64,000 bases of DNA, from the sequence record KY555144.1. One strand, written 5' to 3'. The translations under genes and the position numbers were made by a program. Each line of letters starts with the position of its first letter. Position 1 is the first letter of the stretch. The notes under the pieces were generated by a model. It made no database searches. It had not been told where the DNA came from and saw nothing but the letters and a program-made list of their open reading frames with translations. Positions 8,386-56,057 of this stretch are shown here, piece by piece.

Positions 8386-8874
8386 ATGGCTCGCGACGTG
8401 TCCCGCTTCGCCACCCCTGAAAAGATCATCGGGGGTTACCTCATGACCGCCCAACGCGACGGGGCCATGACTGAGGCCGCCGACGTCATCGCCACCCTAG
8501 AGGCGGCCGGCTATGTCATCGCCCGCCGCCGCGACGTCTACACCGACTCGGGGGTCAAGTTGGGCGACGCCCTGGCGGCGCTTTACGACGCCGTCCCGAA
8601 CTACGCCGTGCGCTCGCAACGGCTCGCCGACGCCCTGACCCCGGCGCGGGATTACGTCTATCAGCCCCGGTTCCGGGCCAAGCTGGACGCCGCGCCCGGC
8701 GCGCGCCTGACCGACTGCGAAACCGGCGCGTGCGTCTATTTCCAGCCGGGCGACGACGCCGAAGCCTTCCGCGCCCTCTTCGCCCCCTGGCTTCGCGACG
8801 ACGACGAGACGGGCGACGGAAAGGCCCTGGCGTCGATGATGAACGCCACGGCCGAAGAATACTTTTCCGGCTAA
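8386..8874 (+). CDS. Hypothetical protein
   Basis: AAGGAGG RBS. Confidence 0.8.
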   Translation: MARDVSRFATPEKIIGGYLMTAQRDGAMTEAADVIATLEAAGYVIARRRDVYTDSGVKLGDALAALYDAVPNYAVRSQRLADALTPARDYVYQPRFRAKLDAAPGARLTDCETGACVYFQPGDDAEAFRALFAPWLRDDDETGDGKALASMMNATAEEYFSG

Positions 8875-9606: not shown

Positions 9607-9642
9607 GCGCACCGCCCCTAGAAAGGCGGTGCGCTTTTCTGT
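9607..9642 (+). terminator. Intrinsic terminator
   Basis: AGCGCACCGCC-CCTAGAAA-GGCGGTGCGCT followed by T-tract. Confidence 0.8.
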
Positions 9643-9731
9643 GTCTGTTTACTTGTTGTTAAGGAATAGCCTGCTAGTGTCCCCTTGTCGGCGGACGCAT
9701 CCCGCGCCCGCCCCTCTCTGGATCGCTCCCC

Positions 9732-10124
9732 ATGGCCCGCCCCTCTGACCTGCTCAACGTCAACGCCGCCCGCGTCCTGGCTTGCCTTGAGCCTATCGCC
9801 GCCGCCGCTAAGACGGCCCCGGCCGCCGACCGCGCCGCCCTTTCCTACCTGCTCGACGCTGGCGAGTATGTCGCCGCGTGGCGCCGCAACCTCACGGAAA
9901 CCGACCGCCGCAAGGCCTATGGCGCGGCCTGCGCCGCCGAAGCCCTGGCGCTCGCCAACGCCTATCAGCCCGCCACCCTGCAAGGCGGCGCCGTCCGCCG
10001 CGCTCTGGGCGCCTATGCCGCCGCCCTAAAGGTCCTGCTGGACGGGGAGCCGGTTAAGGCGGTCCGCGCCGCCGAAGGCGCGGCGCTTTCGGTCCGCGCT
10101 CGCTACGCCAACACCCGCCTTTAA
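9732..10124 (+). CDS. Hypothetical Ala-rich protein
   Basis: GGA RBS; codon bias. Confidence 0.75.
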   Translation: MARPSDLLNVNAARVLACLEPIAAAAKTAPAADRAALSYLLDAGEYVAAWRRNLTETDRRKAYGAACAAEALALANAYQPATLQGGAVRRALGAYAAALKVLLDGEPVKAVRAAEGAALSVRARYANTRL

Positions 10125-45856: not shown

Positions 45857-45860
45857 GACC

Positions 45861-46529
45861 ATGCCGACCAACATCAACATGGCGCCGGACACCACCCTGC
45901 TGGCCGACATCCTCCTCAATGGCGGGGCTGGCGCGCCAGCGGACCTGGAGGATGGCGAACTCTATATCGACGAGGCGGGGCGCAAGCTCTATGTTGAGAC
46001 CGTGGTCGGCGTCCAGGCCATTCCGCTCGACGTCGGCTATGTCCCGCGCCGTCCCAGCGGCACGCCGCTCGATTACGTGGTCAACAAGACCGAGACCGGG
46101 GCCGAGTGGGGACCGCTGGAAGGCGGGGCCGGCGGCTCGCCGTTCGACGCGGCCGAGTTCCGCATCCCCGGCTTGGCTCCCACGGGCCTGGACACGGTTG
46201 CCATGCCCGGCGCCTCCGGAGGCCTGGGCCTGTTCGAGATGCCGATCCAGGACGTGCTCCTGAGCATCCGCGTACACGCCTCGGCGGGCGCGGGGTCCGT
46301 GACCGTGGCGCTCTATCCGTACAACGGCTCGCTCGGCTCGCTGATCTTCACCCAGACCCTGACCTTCGCCGCCCCCGAGGCCCAGGTCGTGCCCGTGTCC
46401 CAGCCCCTGACGCCGGGCGTCTACGCCTGGGTCTGGACCGGGACCGACGGCCTGACCCTCGACGCGATCAAGGGCTCGCTCCCGTGGGCGACGCGCGAGC
46501 AAACCCATCCCGTGGCGATGAAGTTCTAA
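45861..46529 (+). CDS. Fibre-associated protein
   Basis: N-terminal APADLEDGELYID attachment-type motif. Confidence 0.75.
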   Translation: MPTNINMAPDTTLLADILLNGGAGAPADLEDGELYIDEAGRKLYVETVVGVQAIPLDVGYVPRRPSGTPLDYVVNKTETGAEWGPLEGGAGGSPFDAAEFRIPGLAPTGLDTVAMPGASGGLGLFEMPIQDVLLSIRVHASAGAGSVTVALYPYNGSLGSLIFTQTLTFAAPEAQVVPVSQPLTPGVYAWVWTGTDGLTLDAIKGSLPWATREQTHPVAMKF

Positions 46530-46531
46530 CG

Positions 46532-47308
46532 ATGGCGATCCAGAACCCCCATTCCACCACGCCCGGCGCCATGCCGCACCTGACGCCCGGCGAGATCGGC
46601 GTCAACAAGGCCGACGACATCCTCTGGTTCCGCTCGCAGGGGCGCCGCGTGCCGATCATCCTGAGCGACCTTGACCGCGCCCCGCCGGCGGACGGCTATG
46701 TCGGCGCGCCCCTGACCCTGGTGGACGGCGCGCCGGCCTGGAACGTCAAGCTCTTGCCGTCCTCGATCGTCTCCGGCGCGGTCAAGGTCGATCTCCCGCC
46801 CGCCGCCGGGCTACACGCCGTGCCGAGCGTCCTGCTCCAGGGCCTGGGGGCCGATCGCGCCCTGGCGTCCAATGATCTGGACCTCACCCCCTTCTATGTC
46901 CGCTCCGACTCCATCACCCTGACCCATCTGGCCTTCAGCGTGCGCTCGGCGGGCGCGCCGGCCATGCGCGTGGGGATCGTCGATGCCTTCGGCGTCGTCC
47001 AGGCCGACATCCTGGTCGCCGCGCCGGTCGTGGGGGCCAATGTCGTGGCTCTCTCGCCGGTCCTGACCCTCCAGCGCGGCGTCTACCGCACCATCCTGGC
47101 GACGACCGGGGCGGTGACCGTGGGGATCGCCACGGGCGCGCGCATGGAGCAGGGCTGGGACATCATCGCCGACGCGCCGTCGTTCATCCGGGGCTACAGC
47201 GGCAGCAAGAACACCGGCGGCGGTATCGGGAGCCTACCGGCGCTGACCCCGCGCCGCGACCCCGCGCCGGGCCAGGATCACGCCGTCCTCCTGCGCTGGA
47301 CGGCGTGA
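46532..47308 (+). CDS. Fibre-associated protein
   Basis: N-terminal STTPGAMPHLTPGEIGVN motif; C-domain resembles end of the giant fibre. Confidence 0.75.
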   Translation: MAIQNPHSTTPGAMPHLTPGEIGVNKADDILWFRSQGRRVPIILSDLDRAPPADGYVGAPLTLVDGAPAWNVKLLPSSIVSGAVKVDLPPAAGLHAVPSVLLQGLGADRALASNDLDLTPFYVRSDSITLTHLAFSVRSAGAPAMRVGIVDAFGVVQADILVAAPVVGANVVALSPVLTLQRGVYRTILATTGAVTVGIATGARMEQGWDIIADAPSFIRGYSGSKNTGGGIGSLPALTPRRDPAPGQDHAVLLRWTA

Positions 47309-47340
47309 ATCTTGACACTCGGTCGAAATACGGTTAACCT
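47302..47340 (+). promoter_or_regulatory. GGCGTGAATC-TTGACA-N15-GTTAACCT promoter
   Basis: Motif variant. Confidence 0.7.
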
Positions 47341-47370
47341 GCGCGCTCATCTGGAGTTTCGAGCGCCATC

Positions 47371-47637
47371 ATGGCCGAGCTTGTCCGCATCTATCACCCC
47401 GAGACGAACGAGCCGTTCGACGTGATTCCGTCGACCGCTGAACGTCTGCGCCTGGGTCAAGGTCTGGACGGTCTGGTGTGGCTCTCGCAGCCCTTCTCCC
47501 GCGCCGCTGCCGAAGAGCCGGCGCCGGAAGCCCCCAAGGGGCGAGGTCGTAAGCGCGTCGCCGCGCCCGTCTCGGACGAAGCCGAAGACGATGGCTGGCG
47601 TGACGCGCCGACCGAGGACGCTTCCGAAGCCGCGTAA
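47371..47637 (+). CDS. Acidic protein with KGRGRKR motif
   Basis: GGAG RBS; resembles the 33233 gene. Confidence 0.75.
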   Translation: MAELVRIYHPETNEPFDVIPSTAERLRLGQGLDGLVWLSQPFSRAAAEEPAPEAPKGRGRKRVAAPVSDEAEDDGWRDAPTEDASEAA

Positions 47638-47681
47638 GGCGCTTCCCCGTCCACTCTGCTGAAATTCGGTCTCAGTCCCAT

Positions 47682-47757
47682 GTCGGTCTAGCTCATGGGG
47701 TAGAGCGGCGGTCTCCAAAACCGCGCGTGGCAGGTTCGAGTCCTGCGACCGGCGCCA
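47682..47757 (+). tRNA. tRNA-Trp(CCA)
   Basis: Cloverleaf; loop CT-CCA-AA; encoded CCA. Confidence 0.95.
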
Positions 47758-47762
47758 TTTCC

Positions 47763-47837
47763 GCGTCCATCGTATATGGGTTATTGCTTCGCGTTGCCAA
47801 CGCGACGAACCGGGTTCGAGTCCCGGTGGACGCTCCA
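47763..47837 (+). tRNA. tRNA-Gly(GCC)
   Basis: Loop TT-GCC-AA; U73; CCA. Confidence 0.95.
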
Positions 47838-47843
47838 ATCCAG

Positions 47844-47917
47844 GCGGATATAGCTCAAAGGGAGAGCTACTGCCTTCCAAGCAGAAGATGCGGGTTCGAG
47901 CCCCGCTATCCGCTCCA
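47844..47917 (+). tRNA. tRNA-Gly(TCC)
   Basis: Loop CT-TCC-AA; U73; CCA. Confidence 0.95.
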
Positions 47918-47938
47918 AAATTTTCTTCCACGACAAGC

Positions 47939-47967
47939 TTGACAGCCGTCGAGATTTGTGAGAGCCT
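47939..47967 (+). promoter_or_regulatory. Promoter of Glu/Asp tRNA unit
   Basis: TTGACA-N15-GAGAGCCT; twin of the 48735 promoter. Confidence 0.75.
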
Positions 47968-47976
47968 TCAACCATT

Positions 47977-48039
47977 ATGACGCACCTCCTGACCCGTTAC
48001 GAACGCGAGGCCACCGGCCTCGATACCACCACCGCCTAA
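47977..48039 (+). CDS. Putative leader peptide MTHLLTRYEREATGLDTTTA
   Basis: Near-leaderless ORF between promoter and tRNA-Glu/Asp; alternative hairpins. Confidence 0.5.
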   Translation: MTHLLTRYEREATGLDTTTA

Positions 48040-48073
48040 AAGCGGTTCTGGTAACCGAGGCCTTTTGTCATGT

Positions 48074-48151
48074 GGCCCGGTCGTCTAGCGGTTTGCAGGA
48101 TTCGTGACTTTCAATCACGAGAGCGGAGTTCGAGTCTCCGTCGGGCCTCCA
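48074..48151 (+). tRNA. tRNA-Glu(TTC)
   Basis: Loop CT-TTC-AA; CCA. Confidence 0.92.
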
Positions 48152-48174
48152 CCCCCAAAGCCTCCTCTGAGCTT

Positions 48175-48249
48175 GGTGCGTTCGTATATCGGTCAATACT
48201 CCGGATTGTCGATCCGGCAAGAGGGGTTCGATTCCCCTACGCACCGCCA
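48175..48249 (+). tRNA. tRNA-Asp(GTC)
   Basis: Loop TT-GTC-GA; G73; CCA. Confidence 0.95.
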
Positions 48250-48259
48250 GGGCTTTTCC

Positions 48260-48418
48260 ATGCCGCTCCAGTCGGGTTCGAGCGACGCCGTCGTCTCGCA
48301 CAACATCGCCAAGCTGATCGACGAGGGCTACTCCAGGGAGCAGGCCGTGGCGATCGCCCTCTCCCAGGCGCGCAAGCCGCGCCGTCCGAAGGTCTCGCGC
48401 GGCTCGCGCCGGCGCTGA
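48260..48418 (+). CDS. Small basic phage protein
   Basis: MPL..G.S...NI..L..EGY...QAVAIAL pattern; Arg-rich tail. Confidence 0.75.
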
Positions 48419-48489
48419 CCTCGCCTCGCTAAAGCACCCCCAGGTTCCCGGCCTCGTCGTGAGGCCGCCTGCGGTCGCGCGAGGCTTCC

Positions 48490-48714
48490 ATGACCTTTCT
48501 TGATCTTCGTTCGCAGTCGAGCGCCGTGCTCCTGCGCCATGTGTCTTCCCGATCCCCGATGGCGGAAGCGGCTCGCACCGAGTTGCTGACCCGAGGCCTC
48601 GTTCCGCTCCTCACGCGGCACAACGGCTGGCGCCTCGCCCCGAGCGAGCCCTTTCCGCAGCATCTCATCCCGCGCCCCGATCCGCTCGCGAGGTTCACGT
48701 GGCGGGCGGGATGA
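48490..48714 (+). CDS. Hypothetical protein
   Basis: GAGG RBS. Confidence 0.55.
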   Translation: MTFLDLRSQSSAVLLRHVSSRSPMAEAARTELLTRGLVPLLTRHNGWRLAPSEPFPQHLIPRPDPLARFTWRAG

Positions 48715-48734
48715 AGATTTTTCTCACGACGTGC

Positions 48735-48763
48735 TTGACATTCGTTTGAAGTTGTGAGAGCCT
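48735..48763 (+). promoter_or_regulatory. Promoter of Pro/Thr/Lys/Leu/His/Ala/Ser tRNA operon
   Basis: TTGACA-N15-GAGAGCCT. Confidence 0.8.
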
Positions 48764-48857
48764 ACCCAACGTCACGGATCACGACACTCCTCGGAGTGCA
48801 AAAGCGCGATCCTTCGTTATTCCCTGGACGCCAGCGGGCGTCCGTTCGAGAGCCATC

Positions 48858-48995
48858 ATGTTCGCCTTGTCGCATTACAGCCTGAGCACGAAAGCCGCCT
48901 CCCCGGCGTCGCTTTCGCTTGCCCTGCTGGCGACGGCCACGAAGCCCTCGACCAAGCCGACCACCTCGGCCTCGCACTCGACGGATCACCTCTAG
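48858..48995 (+). CDS. Putative attenuator leader peptide (45 aa; 41 residues are S/A/T/L/K/P/H)
   Basis: MFALSHYSLSTKAASPASLSLALLATATKPSTKPTTSASHSTDHL; composition equals downstream tRNA set. Confidence 0.8.
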   Translation: MFALSHYSLSTKAASPASLSLALLATATKPSTKPTTSASHSTDHL

Positions 48996-49071
48996 GGTAT
49001 CTCGTCTCGGGTGCGGGCCTTGGAGCCGCACCCGCTACCAACATCCTGTTGACCTAGCGCAAGGCGGCTCC
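48968..49071 (+). promoter_or_regulatory. Alternative helices of attenuator (A:B, B:C, C:D)
   Basis: 48968-81 pairs with 49007-19; 49008-16 with 49026-34; 49022-29 with 49064-71. Confidence 0.75.
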
Positions 49072-49097
49072 CAGCAAGGAGACCGCCTTTTCTTTTT
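49061..49097 (+). terminator. Attenuator intrinsic terminator
   Basis: AAGGCGGCTCC-CAGCAA-GGAG(A)CCGCCTT then TTCTTTTT, 13 nt before first tRNA. Confidence 0.85.
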
Positions 49098-49109
49098 CGC
49101 GTTGATCAT

Positions 49110-49185
49110 CGGGGTGTAGCTCAGTCGGTAGAGCGCTCGGTTCGGGACCGAGAGGCCGTGGGTTCGAGTCCCGCCACCCAGACCA
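49110..49185 (+). tRNA. tRNA-Pro(CGG)
   Basis: Loop TT-CGG-GA; C1-G72, A73. Confidence 0.93.
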
Positions 49186-49192
49186 ACGCCAT

Positions 49193-49267
49193 CGGGATGT
49201 AGCTCAGCGGTAGAGCGCGCGGCTGGGGGCCGCGAGGCCGCAGGTTCGAGACCTGCCACCCCGACCA
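49193..49267 (+). tRNA. tRNA-Pro(GGG)
   Basis: Loop CT-GGG-GG; C1-G72, A73. Confidence 0.92.
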
Positions 49268-49272
49268 ACAAT

Positions 49273-49345
49273 GCTGCTGCGCCTGGATCGGCGCCGGCCC
49301 CTTGGTATGGGGAAGTAGAAGGTTCAATTCCTTCCGGCAGCACCA
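49273..49345 (+). tRNA. tRNA-Thr(GGT)
   Basis: CCCC/GGGG stem, loop TT-GGT-AT; G1-C72, C2-G71. Confidence 0.75.
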
Positions 49346-49350
49346 ACAAT

Positions 49351-49420
49351 GCCGATGCCTCTAGGAGGACACGTCTTTCGTAATGACGTCAGGTGGGTGC
49401 GATCCCCACTTTCGGCTCCA
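49351..49420 (+). tRNA. tRNA-Thr(CGT), non-canonical
   Basis: Loop TT-CGT-AA with T.T closing pair; T-loop TGCGATC; short D-arm. Confidence 0.6.
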
Positions 49421-49455
49421 TCAAGATGATCAAGGAGAGATCAGACGAAACAAAT

Positions 49456-49542
49456 GGATGTGTCACCTCAGTGGCGAGAGGACCGGGCTCTTAATCCGGC
49501 AGCGAAAGCTCATCGTGGGTTCGAGTCCCACCACATCCTCCA
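49456..49542 (+). tRNA. tRNA-Lys(CTT) with long variable arm
   Basis: Loop CT-CTT-AA; 87 nt; U73. Confidence 0.85.
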
Positions 49543-49547
49543 ATAAT

Positions 49548-49637
49548 GCACGAGTGACCCGAGCGGCGAAGGGCGTCGACTTTTAATCGACTGGGCGTCC
49601 AGCCTCACCGAGGGTTCGAGTCCCTCCTCGTGCTCCA
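49548..49637 (+). tRNA. tRNA-Lys(TTT) with long variable arm
   Basis: Loop CT-TTT-AA; 90 nt; U73. Confidence 0.85.
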
Positions 49638-49643
49638 AGATGT

Positions 49644-49729
49644 GCGAAAGTGGCGGAACAAGGTAGACGCACCGGTCTCAGGTACCGGCGGCTTCGGTCA
49701 TGAGGGTTCGAGTCCCTCCTTTCGTACCA
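49644..49729 (+). tRNA. tRNA-Leu(CAG)
   Basis: Class II; loop CT-CAG-GT; A73. Confidence 0.95.
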
Positions 49730-49736
49730 ACGACAT

Positions 49737-49821
49737 GCCGGTCTGGCGGAAATGGCAGACGCAGTGGCTTCAAGTCCCACCGCCTTCGGGCGTCCCGGTT
49801 CGATGCCGGGGACCGGCACCA
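49737..49821 (+). tRNA. tRNA-Leu(CAA)
   Basis: Class II; loop TT-CAA-GT; A73. Confidence 0.9.
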
Positions 49822-49827
49822 CCATGA

Positions 49828-49915
49828 TGCGAAGTGGCGGAATTTGGTAGACGCACCGGCATGAGAGGCCGGCGCCCTTCGGGGCGTGAGGGTTCGAGTC
49901 CCTTCTTCGCGACCA
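49828..49915 (+). tRNA. tRNA-Leu(GAG)
   Basis: Class II; loop AT-GAG-AG; A73. Confidence 0.92.
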
Positions 49916-49928
49916 AAGACGAGATCAT

Positions 49929-50000
49929 GCCGGCCGGCGCAGGCGCGCGGGGGAGGTTGTGTCCCTCCTTGGCTCAGTTCGATACTGAGGGTCGGTTCCA
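49929..50000 (+). tRNA. tRNA-His(GTG)-like, non-canonical
   Basis: GCCGGCC/GGTCGGT acceptor (G1.U72); GGAGG/CCTCC stem with TT-GTG-TC loop; TTCGATA T-loop; CCA. Confidence 0.6.
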
Positions 50001-50005
50001 GTTAC

Positions 50006-50076
50006 GGGGTATGCGCAGGGCGCAGGCATCCTTTGCAAGGAAGTCGGGGTGGGTTCGAGTCCCACATACTCCACCA
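50006..50076 (+). tRNA. tRNA-Ala(TGC)
   Basis: G3.U70; loop TT-TGC-AA; A73. Confidence 0.88.
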
Positions 50077-50080
50077 ACAC

Positions 50081-50168
50081 GGTAGGTTGGCTGAGAGGCC
50101 GAAGGCGCCCGTTTCGAAAACGGGAGAACTGCAAGGTTCCGTGGGTTCGAATCCCACACCTACCTCCA
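50081..50168 (+). tRNA. tRNA-Ser(CGA)
   Basis: Class II; loop TT-CGA-AA. Confidence 0.93.
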
Positions 50169-50172
50169 ACAT

Positions 50173-50260
50173 GGATGTATGGCTGAGAGGCCGAAGGCGC
50201 CCGCTTGGAAAGCGGGTGAACCGCAAGGTTCCGTAGGTTCGAATCCTACTACATCCGCCA
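50173..50260 (+). tRNA. tRNA-Ser(GGA)
   Basis: Class II; loop TT-GGA-AA; G73. Confidence 0.95.
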
Positions 50261-50264
50261 ACAG

Positions 50265-50351
50265 GGTAGGTGGTTCCGGCCTGGGGCCGGACCCGGTTGC
50301 TAACCGGCCGGAGCCGCAAGGCTTGGGGTTCGATTCCTCCTCCTACCGCCA
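50265..50351 (+). tRNA. tRNA-Ser(GCT)
   Basis: Class II; loop TT-GCT-AA; G73. Confidence 0.88.
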
Positions 50352-50359
50352 CTTCGATG

Positions 50360-50616
50360 TTGACACCCGCGACGCGGCCTGTCATACGTCACGACAGAGC
50401 GAACACCCCCCGGCCGGGTTTGTTGTCATACCGGGTCGTCACGCCCCGTCGGGGCTCTAGTAGCTCTTCGTGTGGAGTTTTCCGCCTCCCTCCCAGACAA
50501 GGAGGCGGACCCAACCAACATCGCGATCTCCCGTGATCGTCGGCGACGGGCGCCGTCAGAGACCTTTGCCTGCGCGGCTCCGCTGCGGCCTCGGTCTCGT
50601 CCCGACCAAATTTTTT
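50360..50616 (+). ncRNA. Candidate structured ncRNA with own promoter
   Basis: TTGACA-N15-GTCATACG; multiple hairpins; no credible ORF; ends in T-run. Confidence 0.4.
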
Positions 50617-50627
50617 CGTCGTGGTGC

Positions 50628-50656
50628 TTGACACTGCGAAACTGTTCTGCTAGGGT
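50628..50656 (+). promoter_or_regulatory. Promoter of Tyr/Phe/Val/Ile/Gln/Asn/Arg tRNA operon
   Basis: TTGACA-N15-GCTAGGGT. Confidence 0.85.
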
Positions 50657-50663
50657 TCACGTC

Positions 50664-50762
50664 ATGAGCAAGACCTATCGTCAATTTGTGCGCCAGATTC
50701 AGGTCGTCCGGAATATCCGGGCGGGCCGCTCGCGCATGGCTGACGAAGGGTTCAGGGACTAG
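50664..50762 (+). CDS. Putative attenuator leader peptide (32 aa)
   Basis: MSKT-YRQFVRQIQVVRNIR-AGRSRMADEGFRD; 15 consecutive residues drawn only from downstream tRNA specificities. Confidence 0.82.
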   Translation: MSKTYRQFVRQIQVVRNIRAGRSRMADEGFRD

Positions 50763-50792
50763 GTCCCGCACCACGCTCAACCAGCTTTCGAG

Positions 50793-50830
50793 AGGCCCGC
50801 CTGGAAACCCCAGGCGGGCCTTTTTCTTTT
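50793..50830 (+). terminator. Attenuator intrinsic terminator
   Basis: AGGCCCGCCTGG-AAACC-CCAGGCGGGCCT then TTTTCTTTT; 5' arm can instead pair with 50720-50732. Confidence 0.9.
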
Positions 50831-50865
50831 CCCCCTTTCGATCACGGAGATCGCCAAACAGACAC

Positions 50866-50950
50866 GGATGCTTAAAGCTGGAGGGCTCCAGCCGGGGACT
50901 GTAAATCCCCTCTCTTCGGAGGAGTGGTTCGATCCCACAAGCATCCACCA
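50866..50950 (+). tRNA. tRNA-Tyr(GTA)
   Basis: Class II; loop CT-GTA-AA; A73. Confidence 0.9.
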
Positions 50951-50955
50951 ACCAC

Positions 50956-51031
50956 GGACTCGTAGCTCAGCAGGTAGAGCGCCGGCTTGAAACCCCGGAG
51001 GTCGGAGGTTCGATTCCTCCCGTTTCCACCA
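50956..51031 (+). tRNA. tRNA-Phe(GAA)
   Basis: Loop TT-GAA-AC. Confidence 0.92.
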
Positions 51032-51036
51032 ACAAC

Positions 51037-51112
51037 GCCCGATGAGCCAGATGGGAAGGCGCCGCCGTGACATGGCGGGATTGAGAAGGTTCGATTCCTT
51101 CATCAGGCACCA
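51037..51112 (+). tRNA. tRNA-Val(GAC)
   Basis: Loop GT-GAC-AT; A73. Confidence 0.9.
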
Positions 51113-51114
51113 AT

Positions 51115-51190
51115 GCAAGTGTAGCTCAGTCGGTAGAGCAGCGGACCGATAATCCGCCCGTCCCTGGTTCGAGTCCAGGCATTTGCACCA
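51115..51190 (+). tRNA. tRNA-Ile(GAT), C33 variant
   Basis: Loop CC-GAT-AA; A73. Confidence 0.85.
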
Positions 51191-51197
51191 ATTCTGA

Positions 51198-51272
51198 TGT
51201 GGCATAGCTCAGGGGTAGAGCGCGCGCTTGATAAGCGTGAGGTCGGGGGTTCGAAGCCCTCTGCCACTACCA
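51198..51272 (+). tRNA. tRNA-Ile(GAT)
   Basis: Loop TT-GAT-AA; A73. Confidence 0.9.
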
Positions 51273-51305
51273 GTTTCCAGGCCGGCGGAGATGCGCCGGA
51301 CCTGA

Positions 51306-51381
51306 TGGCGTTTAGCATAGTGGGAGTGCAGGGGTGTCACATACCTCGATCGAACTGGTTCGATTCCAGTAACGCCAACCA
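51306..51381 (+). tRNA. tRNA-Val(CAC)
   Basis: Loop GT-CAC-AT; A73. Confidence 0.88.
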
Positions 51382-51386
51382 AACGT

Positions 51387-51460
51387 TGAGGGTTCGTCTA
51401 ATGGTAGGACGGCTGGGTCTGGTCCAGCTAATCTAGGTTCGAGTCCTAGCCCCTCATCCA
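51387..51460 (+). tRNA. tRNA-Gln(CTG)
   Basis: Loop GT-CTG-GT. Confidence 0.9.
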
Positions 51461-51467
51461 AGTTTGT

Positions 51468-51541
51468 TCTCGGGTGGTCTAATGGTAAGACATCTGGTTT
51501 TGGTCCAGAGGATTGGGGTTCGATTCCTTGGCCGAGAACCA
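51468..51541 (+). tRNA. tRNA-Gln(TTG)
   Basis: Loop TT-TTG-GT. Confidence 0.9.
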
Positions 51542-51556
51542 ACTATTTGAGTTTAT

Positions 51557-51631
51557 TCCAGTCAATGCACAAGGTGTGCAGCGGCACTGTTAATGCCTGT
51601 GAGCCCGGTTCGATTCCGGGGTCTGGAGCCA
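51557..51631 (+). tRNA. tRNA-Asn(GTT)
   Basis: Loop CT-GTT-AA; G73. Confidence 0.9.
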
Positions 51632-51657
51632 ACACGTCGGCCTCGGCCGGCACATGC

Positions 51658-51740
51658 GCCCTGGTAACCGAGGGGGATTACGAATCCCTTAGTCGTAGCA
51701 GGAGTTGAAAAGGGTGGTTCGAATCCACTCCAGGGTGCCA
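51658..51740 (+). tRNA. tRNA-Arg(ACG)-like, lacking a normal D-arm
   Basis: Acceptor, anticodon (TT-ACG-AA) and T arms intact; about 8 nt in place of D-arm, about 23-nt variable region. Confidence 0.6.
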
Positions 51741-51747
51741 AATTCAT

Positions 51748-51830
51748 AGCGCGCAGGCCGAGCAGGATCATCGTCAGGCGTCGCCCTCCGAAGGCGAAGA
51801 GGCCCGGTTCGAGTCCGGGGCGCGCTGCCA
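51748..51830 (+). tRNA. tRNA-Arg(CCG) with enlarged D-loop
   Basis: Loop CT-CCG-AA; D-loop about 17 nt. Confidence 0.8.
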
Positions 51831-51833
51831 TCC

Positions 51834-51911
51834 GCGCGGGTAGCTCAATGGACCCAGAGCAGCCGTCTTCTACACGGTGGGTTGGGGGTTCGAATCCCTC
51901 CCCGTGCGCCA
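51834..51911 (+). tRNA. tRNA-Arg(TCT)
   Basis: Loop CT-TCT-AC; CCA. Confidence 0.92.
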
Positions 51912-51914
51912 AAC

Positions 51915-52232
51915 TTGACGGGCGATGCCGAATCGCTCAGCTTCCTGATCGGCTCTCGATGGGCCGCCACTGCACGCCACCGACGCCCTCCCGGTACAAG
52001 GAGGGGCGCACGTCGGCGACGTTCCAACCCAGTTCCGGACGATCTTCGAACGCGGCCTGCCGTGGAGGGGTGCTGGAAGGGCCGGGGTTGTGGGAACCGT
52101 CGAGCATCTCCTACATCCGGATTGGGCTTCCTGGGGGCTCCTCCGGTCAACCAGGGCCTGACCCGACCCCGGAGATGCGCCGCCTACGATCACCCAGGAC
52201 CGTCCTGGCGGTGGAAAGGGTCTGAAATTTTT
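51915..52232 (+). ncRNA. Candidate ~310-nt structured ncRNA after last tRNA
   Basis: Long-range stems such as GCATCTCC/GGAGATGC; no codon-biased ORF. Confidence 0.4.
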
Positions 52233-52246
52233 CTGGCGCTGATGTG

Positions 52247-52378
52247 TTGACACTCCTCGGAGGTTCGTCTAAAACCAGCAGCGTCAGAGCGGCGTTGGAC
52301 CACGAGGTCCGCCGCGAGCTTCTGCGTTGTCGTCAGGAACGGCCCGTCAGCAATCCCGCTGGCGGGTCGTTTCGTTTT
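52247..52378 (+). ncRNA. Candidate sRNA (promoter, hairpin, terminator)
   Basis: TTGACA-N15-TCTAAAAC; hairpin 52281-52327; terminator 52341-52378. Confidence 0.5.
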
Positions 52379-52414
52379 GGGCGCGATGCGACGTTCAGTC
52401 CAACCATGGGTAGT

Positions 52415-52453
52415 GTCATGAATCTTGACTTTCGGCGCTTATTCCGGTAGCTT
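52415..52453 (+). promoter_or_regulatory. GTCATGAATC-TTGACT-N15-GGTAGCTT promoter
   Basis: Motif variant. Confidence 0.7.
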
Positions 52454-52498
52454 TCCCGACATCAGCAAACGCTCACAAGTCGGGGACCGAGAGCCGTC

Positions 52499-52915
52499 AT
52501 GTCGCAAGACCACCACGGCTCGTCCTCGGGCCAAGAACGCATCTACCAGAAACTGGATGAGCTTGGCTCCATGCACGCGCGCACCCGTGAAGATATTGCC
52601 CGCATCCAGGAGATGATGCGAGCGGTCGGTTCGTCGCAGGAGCGAATCGAAAAGCGTCAGGACCATTTCGAGCGCGAAATCTGGCGCGAGATGGAAGATC
52701 GCGCCGCGCGCACGAGCGCCCAACTCGACGAAATCAAGAGCCACACCAACCTGCGCATCGAGGAGATCGAGGCCAAGGTCGACACGATCCGCGAGGAGCG
52801 GATCGCCGAAAAGGCCCAGTGGCGCGGCCCCGAGAAGGCCATCGCCGCCCTGGTCGCCGTCGCCGGGGCCATCGCCGCCTTCGCCACCATCCTCACTTTC
52901 CTGAAGGGACACTAG
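52499..52915 (+). CDS. Coiled-coil protein with C-terminal TM anchor
   Basis: Heptad-rich body; IAALVAVAGAIAAFATILTFL tail (XhlA/holin-like topology). Confidence 0.75.
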   Translation: MSQDHHGSSSGQERIYQKLDELGSMHARTREDIARIQEMMRAVGSSQERIEKRQDHFEREIWREMEDRAARTSAQLDEIKSHTNLRIEEIEAKVDTIREERIAEKAQWRGPEKAIAALVAVAGAIAAFATILTFLKGH

Positions 52916-52950
52916 GACTTATAGTCAAGCTTGGGTGCCTGCGGCCAGAA

Positions 52951-52966
52951 GTCGCGCTTCTTGACA
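52951..52966 (+). promoter_or_regulatory. GTCGCGCTTC-TTGACA promoter (degenerate, no GANTC)
   Basis: Motif variant. Confidence 0.5.
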
Positions 52967-53022
52967 CCCGATCTGGGCCGGCATAACCATAGGGCCATCA
53001 TTCCTGGGTGGAGTTTTCCCTA

Positions 53023-53229
53023 ATGGCTGTCGCGCTTACTGTCGTCTCGGTTGAGACCGAATCTACCATCCAAGGTGTTGACCCCGACGCGGCGCATGTC
53101 CGCCTGATCGAGGTCCTGCATACCGCCGCAGAAGCGGGTCTTGGGGAAATGACGTTGGAAGTCAAAGCGGAGATCGCGGCGCTGCTCCAGCAGGCGTCCG
53201 TGGAACTCTCCCACTGCCGGCCGGTGTAG
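53023..53229 (+). CDS. Hypothetical protein
   Basis: GGAG RBS. Confidence 0.6.
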   Translation: MAVALTVVSVETESTIQGVDPDAAHVRLIEVLHTAAEAGLGEMTLEVKAEIAALLQQASVELSHCRPV

Positions 53230-53263
53230 GGGTCCCGTAAATCGCCATCCCAGAGGGAGCGAC

Positions 53264-54130
53264 GTGTCCGAGTCTGCTGAGTTCAACCCGCTCGACCAAA
53301 ATCAGTTCCCTCCTCGCCTCACCAAGGCTGCTGCGCGACAGGCGCGGCGCCAGGAGCGCAGCCAGAAAAAGGACCCCACGGCCAACAAGCCGAACTACAA
53401 GGCGCTCGAAGCCAAGACCGAACGCCAACGGCGCTATATCCAGGCCCTCAAGGCCGGTGAAAGCGTCATCGCCATTGGTGGGGCCGGCACGGGGAAGACC
53501 TATATCCCGTCCCGGCTCTTCGCCAAGAAGCTGATCGAAGCGAAGATCGAACGCCTGATCATCGCCCGCGTCACCGCCTCGCGCCCCAAGCACGCCCTGG
53601 GCTTCCTGCCCGGCAAGCTGGAAGCCAAACTCGCCCCGTGGCTCGTCCCGGTGATCGAGGGCGTCAAGGCCGAGATGAACGCCCAGACCTACACGCAGTT
53701 GCAGGAGGCCGGCAAGATCGAGTTCGCCTCGTTCGAGCATATGCGGGGCCGGACCTTCGCCGAGTGCTGCGTCCTCCTCGACGAGGCGCAGAACGCCGAC
53801 TACAAGGACCTGAAGATGGTCCTGACCCGCTGGGGCGAGAACGCCCAATACGCGGTCACCGGCGACGTCGACCAGATCGACGTCGACGATTCGGGCCTGG
53901 AGACGGTCGTCGACATCGTCGAGACCCACGACATCCCGATCCACGTGATCGAGTTCACCGACGAGGACGTGGTCCGCTCGCCCATGGCCAAGGCCTGGGT
54001 CAAGGCGTTCTCCGCCCACGAGGGCAAGGACGGTCGGACGCGGCGCTTCCATCGCCCCACTGTCAGGAATCTTGACGTCCTGCCGGCTTTTATCGATAAT
54101 GGCCGAGTCACGAAACCCGTGGCGTCGTGA
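53264..54130 (+). CDS. phoH: PhoH-family ATPase
   Basis: GGAGTGKT, LGFLPG, MRGRTF, LDEAQN, TGDVDQID, DVVRS. Confidence 0.95.
   Translation: MSESAEFNPLDQNQFPPRLTKAAARQARRQERSQKKDPTANKPNYKALEAKTERQRRYIQALKAGESVIAIGGAGTGKTYIPSRLFAKKLIEAKIERLIIARVTASRPKHALGFLPGKLEAKLAPWLVPVIEGVKAEMNAQTYTQLQEAGKIEFASFEHMRGRTFAECCVLLDEAQNADYKDLKMVLTRWGENAQYAVTGDVDQIDVDDSGLETVVDIVETHDIPIHVIEFTDEDVVRSPMAKAWVKAFSAHEGKDGRTRRFHRPTVRNLDVLPAFIDNGRVTKPVAS
54062..54077 (+). promoter_or_regulatory. GTCAGGAATC-TTGACG promoter (neck operon)
   Basis: Motif variant inside phoH 3' end. Confidence 0.6.
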
Positions 54131-54131
54131 C
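54107..54131. promoter_or_regulatory. GTCA-N17-TGAC palindromic site
   Basis: GTCACGA-N11-TCGTGAC. Confidence 0.45.
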
Positions 54132-54147
54132 AAAGACGTAGCGCACC

Positions 54148-54669
54148 ATGGCCTTCACCTTCGTTGTTGAGACTGGCGCCGGAGACCCGGCCGCGAACTC
54201 GTACTGCGACGTGCAGTTCGCGGACGACTACATCTACGCCAATGTCTACGCCAACACCGCCTGGGACGCGCTGGATCAGGATGGCAAGGAACGCTTCCTG
54301 GTCCGGGCGTCCAAGTACCTCGACCGCACGATCGCCTGGGCCGGGGAGAAGGTCGACGAGGATTCCGGCCTGCGCTGGCCGCGCACCGGGGTCTACGACA
54401 TCGACGGCTTCCTGATCCCCAGCGACGCGATCCCGCAGCAACTCATGGAGGCCACCGCCGAGATGGCGGCGGCCCTCATGAACAACGACTGGACCTCGCC
54501 GCAGACCACGCGCGGCATGAAGGAAATCCAGGTCGACGTCATCGAACTGAAGTTCGACAGCGAAATCCAGCGCGGCTCCATGCCCGATATCGTCATGTCG
54601 ATCCTCGAAGGTCTGGGGGTCGTCAAGACCGGCACCCGTCCGGCCTTCAAGAAGATCATTCGCCACTAA
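54148..54669 (+). CDS. Head-tail adaptor (DnaT-like family)
   Basis: ANSYCDV...A...LDR...GLRWPR...IPQQL..ATAEMA pattern. Confidence 0.8.
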   Translation: MAFTFVVETGAGDPAANSYCDVQFADDYIYANVYANTAWDALDQDGKERFLVRASKYLDRTIAWAGEKVDEDSGLRWPRTGVYDIDGFLIPSDAIPQQLMEATAEMAAALMNNDWTSPQTTRGMKEIQVDVIELKFDSEIQRGSMPDIVMSILEGLGVVKTGTRPAFKKIIRH

Positions 54670-55061
54670 TGGCCCTCGAAGCCTTCATCCGTTCCCAGGT
54701 CGTCATCGCCTTCAACCAGCTTGACGACATTGCCAAGCGCTGGACCTACGTCCAACGCTCGGGCGATCCGGTGCGCGATGTCGAGAGCGGCGTGACCACC
54801 TATCCATCGACCGAGATCGTCATTCCCAAGGCGGTCAAGGTGCGGTTCAAGAAGGACGAGAAGGACGCCCACGGCCAGACCCTGGTGGGCGAGAAGGTCC
54901 TGTTCCCCCGCGTCTTCCTGCCGGGCGACTTCGAGACCGCGACCTCCGACTATCTCGTCGATCAGAACGACATCATCTGGGAGATCATCAGCGACCTGGG
55001 CGACCCGGCCTCGGCGCTGGCGATGTTCCAGGTCCGCAGCACGCGGAAGAAGACCCCGTGA
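54669..55061 (+). CDS. Head closure/neck protein
   Basis: TAATG overlap; synteny. Confidence 0.7.
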   Translation: MALEAFIRSQVVIAFNQLDDIAKRWTYVQRSGDPVRDVESGVTTYPSTEIVIPKAVKVRFKKDEKDAHGQTLVGEKVLFPRVFLPGDFETATSDYLVDQNDIIWEIISDLGDPASALAMFQVRSTRKKTP

Positions 55062-55531
55062 AGTCGGGCGGAGCCAAGCTCAGCTTCTACACCGACGGGA
55101 ACCTGGAGGCGGCGTTCAAGCGCTTCTTCGCCACCGCCGAGAAGCGCTATGACGAGCGGGCCGATCGCCTGCTGATCAAGCTGAACGAACTGATCCTGGC
55201 CCGCACCCCGGTGTGGGAAGGCGACACCATCCACAACTGGCGCTGGTCGACGCGCGCCCCGGACATGCGCCACGAGGCCCCGCTCGACAATGGCGATCCG
55301 GGCCGCACGAGCGAGATGGACCTGGGCCAGGAGCCGCGCCGCCGCGTTAACGAGACGCGCCCCCGCCAGTCGCTGGCCGGCGCCCTGCGCGCCAAGGAGC
55401 CGATCGACATCTATCTGACCAACACCGCCGAGAGCGCGGTCGATCTCGAATACGGCCTGCTCCCGACCAGGGCGCAGAGCCGAAACAAGATGGGGATGGT
55501 CCGAATCTCGATTAAAGAGGTGTTCGGATGA
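55058..55531 (+). CDS. Neck protein (HK97 gp10-like)
   Basis: RTPVWEG...NW...YLTN...LEYG. Confidence 0.75.
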   Translation: MKSGGAKLSFYTDGNLEAAFKRFFATAEKRYDERADRLLIKLNELILARTPVWEGDTIHNWRWSTRAPDMRHEAPLDNGDPGRTSEMDLGQEPRRRVNETRPRQSLAGALRAKEPIDIYLTNTAESAVDLEYGLLPTRAQSRNKMGMVRISIKEVFG

Positions 55532-55602
55532 TCCCCGCCTTCATCATCCTGCCGCGCGTCTATCTCGCCGCGTGGCTGTCGTTTTGGCTGGGAGAGGACT
55601 GA
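55528..55602 (+). CDS. 24-aa hydrophobic micro-protein
   Basis: MIPAFIILPRVYLAAWLSFWLGED; GAGG RBS; ATGA and TGATG coupling. Confidence 0.55.
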   Translation: MIPAFIILPRVYLAAWLSFWLGED

Positions 55603-56057
55603 TGCTCGAACACGACATGCTCCGGCAAGTCCTGGAGCAGCAGGCCGTCGCCGCCGCCCCGACGATCGGGCTGAAGCTGAACTTCGACAACTCCGAATTC
55701 GTCCAGCCCAAGGACGGTGCGCACTGGGCTGAGTTCTGGGTCCAGACGGGCAACACCGTGCCCTGCGAGGTCGCTGGCCCGCGCGGCTACGAAAAGACCT
55801 CGGGCCTGATCCAGTTCACGCTCAAGGCCCCCGAGGAAGAAGGCAACGGCGCGATCCTCAAGAAGGCCGGCGCGCTCAAGAAGGTCTTCAACCGCCGCCA
55901 ATGGGTCGTGCCGCCGGACGGCTATGTCACCCTCGACCCGATCTCGGTCCAGTCGCACGGCAAGCCGATCGACGGCTTCTATAATGTCGTGGTCTGGGCG
56001 ACCCTCTGGTTCCACCACCGCGATCCCGACGCCGACGATCGCTGGATTCGCGGTTGA
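55602..56057 (+). CDS. Tail terminator/completion protein
   Basis: GAGGA RBS; position before tail tube; DUF4128-like pattern. Confidence 0.75.
   Translation: MLEHDMLRQVLEQQAVAAAPTIGLKLNFDNSEFVQPKDGAHWAEFWVQTGNTVPCEVAGPRGYEKTSGLIQFTLKAPEEEGNGAILKKAGALKKVFNRRQWVVPPDGYVTLDPISVQSHGKPIDGFYNVVVWATLWFHHRDPDADDRWIRG

Follow-up and report, generated by a model that had tools for sequence, protein, structure and literature searches.

The twelve-gene tRNA operon of Caulobacter phage Ccr5, a phiCbK-like giant phage, is preceded by what its sequence indicates is very probably a ribosome-mediated transcription attenuator, in which operon output would be set by the decoding speed of codons that match the downstream tRNAs. 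The element lies in the window, a stretch of 64,000 nucleotides identical to bases 1-64000 of KY555144.1. A host-type promoter of conserved geometry, a short ORF whose codons match the tRNA genes behind it, and three mutually exclusive RNA helices follow one another, and this arrangement is conserved, with covariation, in related phages. The initial annotation had proposed a classic attenuator at this site; every defining sequence feature of that anatomy is present, with compensatory changes in 18 relatives.

Promoter and leader ORF

The leader begins with two elements in close succession.

50628-50656, + strand: host-type promoter, with -35 TTGACA at 50628-50633, a 17-nt spacer and -10 TAGGGT at 50651-50656
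50664-50762, + strand: leader ORF of 32 codons followed by TAG, with the product MSKTYRQFVRQIQVVRNIRAGRSRMADEGFRD

A AAATTTTTT stretch lies upstream of the promoter (50608-50616), and the form CTTGACA-N17-TAGGKT is also found at other phage promoters in the window (30392 and 56090). The ORF, which the initial annotation had described as near-leaderless, is present as described, its start and in-frame stop falling between promoter and terminator; all 18 relatives carry an orthologous leader ORF of 31-32 codons. Only 7 nt separate the -10 element from the ATG at 50664. Because a host-type promoter stands so close to the start codon, the ORF is probably leaderless, and the transcript is predicted from the sequence to begin at the A of the ATG or 1 nt before it. 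Every lineage read preserves the order -35, 17-18 nt, -10, exactly 7 nt and ATG around spacers of differing sequence, and none of them has a Shine-Dalgarno sequence ahead of the leader ATG. In Caulobacter, leaderless mRNAs are translated as well as leadered ones (PMC4117421).

The downstream tRNA genes

Behind the leader lie the genes that it would control, four of which were assigned by reading their anticodons by eye.

50866-51911, + strand: the twelve controlled genes, identified by eye, with ARAGORN and Rfam, and from the annotation of relatives
about 50866-50950, + strand: putative tRNA Tyr GTA
51557-51631, + strand: putative tRNA Asn GTT
about 51658-51740, + strand: putative tRNA Arg ACG
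51748-51830, + strand: putative tRNA Arg CCG

The gene order is Tyr GTA, Phe GAA, Val GAC, Ile GAT, Ile GAT, Val CAC, Gln CTG, Gln TTG, Asn GTT, Arg ACG, Arg CCG and Arg TCT, so all seven specificities previously named (Tyr, Phe, Val, Ile, Gln, Asn and Arg) are found. ARAGORN and Rfam detect Phe GAA, Val GAC, both Ile GAT, Val CAC, Gln CTG, Gln TTG and Arg TCT. The other four of the twelve (Tyr GTA, Asn GTT, Arg ACG and Arg CCG) are putative tRNAs with non-canonical D arms or variable arms; the Rfam tRNA model misses them, and their orthologues were identified with relaxed ARAGORN settings and from the annotation of relatives. The first tRNA gene begins 35 nt after the T-run of the terminator. 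In every relative the seven specificities downstream of the leader are identical, so that none of them offers a natural case in which leader composition could be compared with a changed tRNA set.

Genomes of the phiCbK type are under-annotated in this region; most records lack the leaders as well as roughly one third of the tRNA genes. The phiCbK genome paper reported tRNAs as the sole RNA elements and called Thr and Tyr tRNAs absent (PMC3556154).

Leader codons match the downstream tRNAs

The match between leader and tRNA genes resides in one uninterrupted part of the ORF.

50676-50720, + strand: control stretch, codons 5-19, YRQFVRQIQVVRNIR, built from the seven-amino-acid set {Y,F,V,I,Q,N,R}

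These codons (TAT CGT CAA TTT GTG CGC CAG ATT CAG GTC GTC CGG AAT ATC CGG) read exactly as the initial annotation listed them and come only from the seven downstream specificities. With the amino-acid set fixed beforehand by the downstream tRNA genes, we scanned all six frames of the 64 kb (127,996 codons; set frequency 0.30). The control stretch is the longest run in the set, at 15 codons; the next longest have 9 and are mostly Arg runs. It had also been claimed that each isoacceptor is sampled. This holds for 10 of the 11 distinct downstream anticodons and fails for Arg-TCT, since the AGG codon near the ORF end that was assigned to it is not conserved, being CGG in phiCbK and Ccr10 and absent elsewhere. 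A or T occupies the third position in 6 of the 15, more than expected from phage genes, whose GC3 is 0.886 (P = 0.004). Over codons 20-32, in-set residues (4 of 13) are near the background of about 0.31, and the enrichment is thus confined to segment 1, the 5' arm of the first hairpin. Some features of the stretch count against the model, the missing Arg-TCT codon among them. Asn occurs in the Ccr5 leader only within codons 17-19, which fall in the loop of the first hairpin and in segment 2, and a ribosome stalled there would mask part of segment 2. An A/U-rich loop alone could give the in-set residues N, I, F and Y at codons 17-18.

The whole tRNA cluster consists of four sub-operons, three of which have a leader ORF of this kind ahead of them; the Trp/Gly block is without one. 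The ORF at 47371-47637 was considered as a Trp/Gly leader and rejected, because no terminator follows it and its product is an unremarkable conserved small protein. Of the two further leaders, leader a has an invariant E-x-E...D ahead of tRNA-Glu and tRNA-Asp, and the other stands before a larger block.

48858-48995: leader b, preceding 14 tRNAs (Pro, Thr, Lys, Leu, His, Ala, Ser)

Leader b contains 35 consecutive codons that are all drawn from {P,T,K,L,H,A,S}, its own downstream set, and its counterparts in Bajun, Gurke and Colossus have the same composition in very different sequences. A neighbouring unit, with a promoter at 52247 and a terminator at 52355-52378, specifies a short RNA without an ORF.

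Three mutually exclusive helices

Minimum-energy and truncated folds, together with a terminator scan, give the following elements.

50672-50712, + strand: segment 1, 5' arm of the 1:2 hairpin, coinciding with the control codons (minimum-energy fold)
50716-50752, + strand: segment 2, which forms the 3' arm of 1:2 and, with its initial 17 nt (50716-50732), also the 5' strand of the antiterminator
50755-50767, + strand: stop-codon hairpin GGGAC-UAG-GUCCC, with the leader stop in the loop (minimum-energy fold)
50789-50805, + strand: segment 3, which has two alternative partners, segment 2 (in antiterminator 2:3) and segment 4 (in the terminator)
50790-50830, + strand: intrinsic terminator 3:4, with core stem 50794-804 / 50810-820, loop AAACC and T-run 50821-830

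The initial annotation gave the 1:2 hairpin as GTCCGGA (50706-12) paired with TCCGGGC (50716-22). That pairing exists, and it is only the top of a much longer helix of about 31 pairs that encloses the whole control stretch (-39.8 kcal/mol for the hairpin alone). The 2:3 helix was located where it had been proposed, between GGCGGGCC-G-CTCG (50720-32) and CGAG-A-GGCCCGCC (50789-801), and it covaries in relatives; in the truncated fold its full extent is 50716-32 with 50789-805, and the duplex has -34 kcal/mol. The terminator, likewise at the proposed site, reads GGCCCGCCTGG (50794-804), CCAGGCGGGCC (50810-820) and then TTTTTCTTTT (50821-830), and the scan assigns it 15 pairs, 10 of them G-C; folding gives it -30.5 kcal/mol. 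Segment 2 does repeat the 3' arm of the terminator, with CCGGGCGGGCC (50717-27) agreeing at 10 of 11 bases, and the two structures are mutually exclusive. Over the whole window the motif CCRGGCGGGCC has three matches versus 1.04 expected, and all three lie in the leader, as segment 2, segment 3 (reverse complement) and segment 4. The minimum-energy fold has -84 kcal/mol (z = -5.2 versus shuffles).

Folding of the full transcript at equilibrium lets the terminator win at every ribosome position, and equilibrium folding with segment 4 included was for that reason set aside as an uninformative predictor of the switch. Before segment 4 is made, 2:3 is favoured even without a ribosome. When ribosome footprints are imposed at this stage, a ribosome stalled at codons 2-16 allows 2:3 to form, and one covering codons 17-26 prevents it. 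In these folding models the outcome of the switch is kinetic, not thermodynamic. Since thermodynamics does not decide it, the model requires 1:2 to be trapped kinetically, as in trp.

The same calculations bear on the opposite sign of control, in which efficient translation would open 1:2 and let 2:3 form, so that the tRNAs are switched on by good decoding and off by stalled or absent ribosomes. Equilibrium indeed favours 2:3 whenever segment 2 is uncovered, even with the ribosome at the stop codon, and in leader a the first hairpin is itself the antiterminator. We regard this inverted logic as extremely unlikely, however. In-set codons are restricted to segment 1, where a stall frees segment 2, and a ribosome on codons 17-26 blocks 2:3. 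Moreover, no obvious benefit would come from positive feedback on tRNA supply, and the stop-codon hairpin and rapid re-zipping of 1:2 fit termination after fast translation.

Conservation and covariation in relatives

The 18 relatives, whose hosts are Caulobacter and Brevundimonas, represent five lineages: Shapirovirus, Poindextervirus, Bertelyvirus, Colossusvirus and Brevundimonas phages. Across them, 87.7% of the alignment cells in 1:2 and 3:4 are paired, with 10 pairs changed on both sides. These compensatory changes are at alignment pairs 10/88, 23/76, 29/70, 47/55, 48/54 and 49/53 in 1:2 and at 142/158, 144/156, 145/155 and 146/154 in 3:4. For 2:3, 89.6% of the cells are paired, versus at most 58% in controls with the partner slid by 1-3 columns, and both sides changed at 5 of 16 pairs (53/147, 54/146, 56/144, 58/142 and 66/134). 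A three-way covariation is seen in CcrSC and BL9, in which segment 2 changes G to A, segment 3 C to T and segment 4 G to A. The energies of all three helices are maintained in 18 of 18 sequences; RNAalifold independently predicts the top of the 1:2 hairpin, and the terminator carries a rho-independent terminator annotation in phiCbK, Swift, Karma and Colossus. The stop codon lies in or beside a hairpin loop in every one of the 18, with stems that differ between relatives (GAGGG/CCCUC, GUGGGC/GCCCAC, CAGAU/AUCUG).

An alignment of orthologues had been suggested as a check on whether relatives with the same tRNA set conserve the control stretch. What they conserve is its composition rather than its sequence: none of the 10 distinct control peptides lacks any of the seven amino acids, and the positions of F, N, Q, R, V and I are interchanged among them. 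Minimal replacements stay within the seven-member set in 13 of 16 cases versus 23% expected (P about 1e-6); exchanges between chemically unrelated residues, such as F/N, V/R, I/N and V/F, are among them. Searches for further relatives gave only known isolates in an IMG/VR pattern scan, no match in a metagenome pattern scan, two unrelated loci in a PhoH-based metagenome scan and only close relatives in a protein search with leader b.

These patterns weigh on two other readings of the leader. According to one, the same attenuator reports general translation capacity (ribosome availability or 70S loading on leaderless RNA) instead of the supply of specific tRNAs, for example after host shut-off, and any delay in starting or finishing the ORF leads to read-through. 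A kinetic switch would suit this reading, as would leader b, whose stop codon sits at the apex of its first hairpin and whose ORF resembles a 45-codon timer; leaderless starts, in addition, depend on 70S ribosomes (PMC4117421). It nevertheless seems unlikely, as it leaves unexplained the match of each leader to its own arbitrary downstream set, the in-set replacements and the excess of rare wobble-read codons.

According to the other, the promoter-terminator unit is a gene of its own, whose product, a small RNA of about 165 nt, a 32-residue peptide or both, acts in trans, and the tRNAs come from constitutive leakage of the terminator or from upstream transcription. The neighbouring ORF-less unit offers a parallel, the leader ORF is annotated as a hypothetical protein in some records, and in Sinorhizobium the RNA from the terminated trp attenuator and its peptide are reported to act in trans (PMC7968998, PMC7298713). 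Yet 2:3, whose pairing is conserved with covariation, would be superfluous in an independent RNA that stops at the terminator, and the peptide evolves by chemically unrelated swaps within the tRNA set. Reading of the sequence between the terminator and tRNA-Tyr found no promoter-like site, which also speaks against this reading, and we judge it very unlikely. A role in trans could exist besides attenuation.

Proposed mechanism of attenuation

Attenuation that responds to the matching tRNAs is our preferred reading. The start of transcription, translation of the ORF, kinetic coupling and the physiological signal are steps that we infer, as follows. Host RNA polymerase would begin at or beside the ATG, and a 70S ribosome would load on the leaderless 5' end and translate codons 5-19. 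These require all seven amino acids of the set, frequently by way of rare codons read by wobble. If any in-set aminoacyl-tRNA is scarce, the ribosome would linger on segment 1 and leave segment 2 unpaired. The free segment 2 would then take the emerging segment 3, so that no terminator forms and the tRNA genes are transcribed. With fast decoding, the ribosome would cross segment 2 to the stop codon and 1:2 would re-form behind it, allowing 3:4 to pair and transcription to stop at about 50825-50830. The direction of control, in which slow decoding raises tRNA transcription, is suggested by analogy with the trp, his and ilv attenuators. tRNA supply would in this way come under negative feedback, the seven amino acids being combined by OR logic. 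The signal could be loss of host tRNAs, through infection or tRNA-cleaving defences, or a rise in demand.

More broadly, we consider it fairly likely that the phiCbK subfamily possesses a tRNA homeostat, in which test ORFs sample the encoded isoacceptors and slow decoding opens the terminator, so that the tRNAs are made only during shortage. The source of such a shortage could be host shut-off, tRNA-cleaving defence nucleases or the demand of late genes.

The purpose and regulation of phage tRNA genes are an open question. Proposals include codon-usage matching, replacement of a decaying host pool and escape from anticodon nucleases. An attenuator of this kind would show a phage measuring tRNA sufficiency directly and correcting it through feedback. 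The leader would also offer a compact natural sensor of charged tRNA that covers many isoacceptors at once, and the question is testable in a tractable system, C. crescentus NA1000/CB15 with phiCbK or Ccr5.

Comparison with known systems

Besides the classic trp and his cases, enterobacteria have multivalent attenuators, ilvL of ilvGMEDA (Ile-Leu-Val) and thrL of thr (Thr-Ile). Like these, the phage leader has a short ORF with control codons in segment 1, exclusive 1:2, 2:3 and 3:4 helices and an intrinsic terminator before the controlled genes, and it would sense more than one amino acid. The switch is kinetic in both, with a 2:3 stability about that of 1:2. Unlike ilvL and thrL, which have runs of one or two amino acids ahead of biosynthetic enzymes, the phage leader precedes tRNA genes and samples seven amino acids through 10 isoacceptors, mostly once or twice each. 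It also has a predicted leaderless start and a conserved stop-codon hairpin. If our reading is true, it would have the widest amino-acid repertoire of any known leader peptide, seven each in two leaders with complementary sets.

T-box riboswitches also sense tRNA status and choose between terminator and antiterminator. Unlike the phage leader, with its ORF and seven specificities, a T-box works without translation: it recognises a single uncharged tRNA by direct binding and is marked by its specifier loop and T-box motif. Rfam matches over the cluster were to tRNAs only; neither a T-box nor any other cis-regulatory family was detected at gathering score in 44000-56000, or at E <= 1 in 50600-52450. 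Sinorhizobium meliloti trpL (rnTrpL/peTrpL) shares the ribosome-dependent attenuator and the alphaproteobacterial setting, and its termination releases a stable small RNA; it differs in controlling trp biosynthesis and sensing Trp only (PMC7968998, PMC7298713).

We found no description of attenuators ahead of tRNA genes in the literature searched. E. coli pheV was considered as a precedent and rejected, since in K-12 the roughly 110 nt ahead of the gene hold promoters alone, with no Phe-codon ORF and no terminator. The small ORFs in the tRNA region of phage T5 are mostly unremarkable; T5.072 and T5.070 are leads. In E. coli pheST, the leader peptide pheM likewise stands before a gene of the translation apparatus, and charged-tRNA supply feeds back. 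A small leader CDS also lies upstream of Caulobacter trpS (PMC4117421). Unlike these two, in which a synthetase and one amino acid are concerned, the phage leader precedes the tRNA genes themselves. If true, it would be the first known attenuator controlling tRNA genes, extending leader-peptide attenuation from enzymes and synthetases to the tRNAs.

Leader c and its tRNA genes

Leader c (50628-50830), a promoter, leader ORF and terminator ahead of 12 tRNA genes, shows every feature by which leader-peptide attenuators are defined at the sequence level, and very probably attenuates the tRNA operon in a way that depends on translation. The initial annotation had read it as a classic attenuator with alternative 1:2, 2:3 and 3:4 helices; its elements all sit where it placed them, and covariation in 18 copies further supports this reading.

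The window is 100% identical to bases 1-64000 of the Ccr5 genome; Ccr5 is a phiCbK-like giant siphophage of Caulobacter. ARAGORN and Rfam place the tRNA cluster at 47682-51911 (+ strand). Relaxed ARAGORN and reading by eye added Thr GGT, Thr CGT, His GTG, Ser GCT, Tyr GTA, Asn GTT, Arg ACG and Arg CCG genes, none of which matches the Rfam tRNA model or is found by default ARAGORN. About one third of the cluster's tRNA genes depart from the canonical form, showing a long hairpin-like D arm or odd variable arms (49270-49425, 49925-50005, 50265-50351, 50866-50950, 51557-51631, 51640-51830). According to the phiCbK genome paper, there are no Thr or Tyr tRNAs (PMC3556154). The genes form four blocks, with the same partition in every relative examined:

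Block 1: Trp, Gly
Block 2, behind leader a: Glu, Asp
Block 3, behind leader b: Pro, Thr, Lys, Leu, His, Ala, Ser
Block 4, behind leader c: Tyr, Phe, Val, Ile, Gln, Asn, Arg

A leader was looked for at the Trp/Gly block and none was found. In Colossus-type and Brevundimonas phages (loci L006, L007, L008, L009, L010, L019, L020, L024), the gene for peptide deformylase, another translation-related gene adjoining the cluster, lies up to about 1.3 kb upstream of leader c.

The elements of leader c, with the promoter and ORF read from the sequence, are:

50628-50633, + strand: -35 element TTGACA, followed by a 17-nt spacer
50651-50656, + strand: -10 element TAGGGT
50664, + strand: ATG of the leader ORF, peptide MSKTYRQFVRQIQVVRNIRAGRSRMADEGFRD
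50672-50712 with 50716-50752: hairpin 1:2, long and imperfect, the 5' arm being the control stretch (fold)
50755-50767: hairpin with the stop codon in its loop (fold)
50716-50732 with 50789-50805: antiterminator 2:3 (fold cut before segment 4)
50790-50830: terminator 3:4 (terminator scan)

The promoter is similar to others of Ccr5, and its -10 element ends 7 nt upstream of the ATG. As had been proposed, codons 5-19 encode solely the seven amino acids of the 12 downstream genes. Scanned in all six frames (~128,000 codons), the window has no longer run of the set: this one has 15 codons, the next best 9; past codon 19, in-set residues fall to background. An A or T third base occurs in 6 of the 15 control codons, against 89% G+C at third positions in the genome's genes (P = 0.004). 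The claim that the stretch samples each isoacceptor holds, by wobble rules, for 10 of the 11 distinct downstream anticodons; Arg-TCT is unsampled, and the AGG codon suggested to serve it is not conserved among relatives.

Alternative structures and their conservation

Leader c folds with -84 kcal/mol (z = -5.2), and hairpin 1:2 alone has -39.8 kcal/mol. Three copies of the 11-mer CCRGGCGGGCC exist in 64 kb, and leader c holds them all, as segments 2 and 4 and, in reverse complement, segment 3. Segment 2 repeats the terminator's 3' arm, as the initial annotation had noted, and the 2:3 pairing does appear as an alternative to the terminator when the fold stops before segment 4.

Shapirovirus, Poindextervirus, Bertelyvirus, Colossusvirus and several Brevundimonas phages have a leader c that can be recognised from DNA similarity, and 18 distinct copies were read. 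Each has an ORF of 31-32 codons and the same seven tRNA specificities downstream. The distance from the -10 hexamer to the ATG is 7 nt in every copy, in spite of differences in the sequence around them, and this favours a leaderless start; leaderless mRNAs are translated efficiently in the host, Caulobacter (PMC4117421). The control stretch keeps its composition, but not its sequence:

Ccr5: YRQFVRQIQVVRNIR
RB23: YRQFVRQIQFVRVNR
Colossus: YRNNVRQIRVRQFNL
Gurke: YRQNVQNIRVVRFYR
Bajun: YRQNVQNIRVVRFNR

All seven amino acids are present in 10 of 10 distinct peptides. The ortholog alignment bears out the expected conservation in relatives with the same tRNA set: 13 of 16 minimal changes are in-set replacements, versus 23% expected from single-base neighbours (P about 1e-6), and many swap unrelated residues (F/N, V/R, I/N). 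In the 18-sequence alignment, 87.7% of cells are paired in the terminated state (1:2 plus 3:4), and 10 of its pairs are changed on both sides; antiterminator 2:3 has 89.6% paired and both-sided changes in 5 of 16 pairs, with slid controls at most 58%. One column links all three helices: in CcrSC and BL9, segment 2 changes G to A, segment 3 C to T and segment 4 G to A, with Bajun as intermediate. RNAalifold independently recovered the top of 1:2 and the terminator, and helix energies and the stop-codon hairpin are retained in 18 of 18 copies.

Between terminator c and tRNA-Tyr, many relatives carry a mini-ORF with a strong Shine-Dalgarno sequence, GGAG (L001 about 5008-5036; L003, L006, L007, L008, L009). 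It encodes MNNGG* in Rogue, BL57, Colossus and PW, MTGGD* in Gurke and Bambus, and MTGN* in RB23; Ccr5 has kept GGAGATCGCC and lost the mini-ORF.

Proposed switch

The RNA was folded with a 27-nt ribosome footprint placed at each codon. On the whole transcript the terminator is favoured at every ribosome position, which points to a kinetic switch, as in trp. Before segment 4 exists, 2:3 forms with the A site at codons 2-16 and is blocked when the ribosome occupies codons 17-26. The former suggests that a ribosome delayed on the control codons would leave segment 2, or at least the toehold 50725-50732, free, so that the antiterminator could form and give read-through. A ribosome running on would first cover segment 2 and, once at the stop codon, would stand inside the 2:3 loop while 1:2 re-zipped behind it, leading to termination. 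Without translation, termination would hinge on 1:2 forming first, which leaves no free toehold. We infer these steps. The model is weakest at codons 17-19, since these are located in the loop and segment 2.

Leaders a and b

Two further units lie in the same cluster:

47939-48068: leader a, promoter TTGACA at 47939
47977-48039: leader a ORF, 20 codons, peptide MTHLLTRYEREATGLDTTTA
48735-49097: leader b, promoter TTGACA at 48735
48858-48995: leader b ORF, 45 codons, peptide MFALSHYSLSTKAASPASLSLALLATATKPSTKPTTSASHSTDHL
48879-48983: leader b control run, 35 codons in a row that all specify P, T, K, L, H, A or S
49022-49029 with 49064-49071: leader b antiterminator candidate, GGAGCCGC with GCGGCTCC
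About 49061-49097: leader b terminator

The 14 genes behind the leader b terminator (Pro x2, Thr x2, Lys x2, Leu x3, His, Ala, Ser x3) have exactly these seven specificities, and the leader b run is the longest for that set in six frames of the window (35 vs 20). In the fold, alternative helices form a chain leading to the terminator, and the stop codon is at a hairpin apex. Distant blastn with leader b DNA did not find the Bajun, Gurke and Colossus orthologues, which are too diverged; their amino-acid composition is kept. In leader a, E-x-E...G-x-D is invariant in five lineages, with tRNA-Glu and tRNA-Asp downstream. Two CGAGGCC copies (48006-48012, and 48056-48062 followed by TTTTGT) compete for GGCCTCG at 48016-48022; the T-run is weak in some relatives.

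A function of the peptides themselves might have explained the composition of the leaders. The two large sets, of leaders b and c, are arbitrary and complementary, and peptide function is therefore ruled out as the cause.

Each of the three leaders has a small hairpin with the stop codon in its loop (leader c 50755-50767, with equivalents in 18 relatives; leader b 48986-49000; leader a 48030-48047), and the hairpin stem shows covariation between lineages. The hairpin might serve as a pause signal, as a scaffold joining segments 2 and 3, or in the control of ribosome release.

A further promoter at 52247 (TTGACA, TAAAAC, AAATTTTT upstream) is of the tRNA-leader subclass. About 95 nt lacking a start codon follow, then a terminator (CCCGC-TG-GCGGG, 52355-52366, with a T-rich tail), at a place equivalent to an annotated terminator in phiCbK; the unit, 52247-52378, probably specifies a small RNA. 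The gene at 52499 is served by a second promoter, at 52424, that belongs to the recurrent Ccr5 motif GTCGTGAATCTTGACA (19380, 22323, 25401, 30392, 33139, 47311, 52424, 54071, 56090), which differs from AAATTTTT-N11-13-CTTGACA, a form confined to the tRNA leaders and 52247. The two motifs may represent different temporal classes.

Comparison with known systems

Our literature search turned up no attenuator described upstream of tRNA genes, and the phiCbK genome paper mentions none (PMC3556154). E. coli pheV was considered as a precedent among tRNA genes and dropped, its sequence having no attenuator. In phage T5 (NC_005859.1, locus L028, minus strand), T5.072 (9618-9893), which immediately precedes tRNA-Tyr, Glu, Trp and Phe, contains SWEGWEGEIEWLYFYDVE, with 3 Trp, 5 Glu, 2 Tyr and 1 Phe in 18 residues; T5.070 (8628-8756, minus strand; 42 aa, 6 Cys) immediately precedes tRNA-Cys. 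These may be codon-matched ORFs in other tRNA-rich phages, or coincidences. Judged from sequence, what appears new in leader c is the class of regulated gene, the predicted sensing of seven amino acids, the probable leaderless start and the phage origin, together with a set of such units inside one tRNA cluster. Leader c is not a T-box, as Rfam matches nothing but tRNAs in the region. Its mode of action would be that of the multivalent leader-peptide attenuators, such as ilv and thr, and, like pheST, it would act on the translation apparatus.
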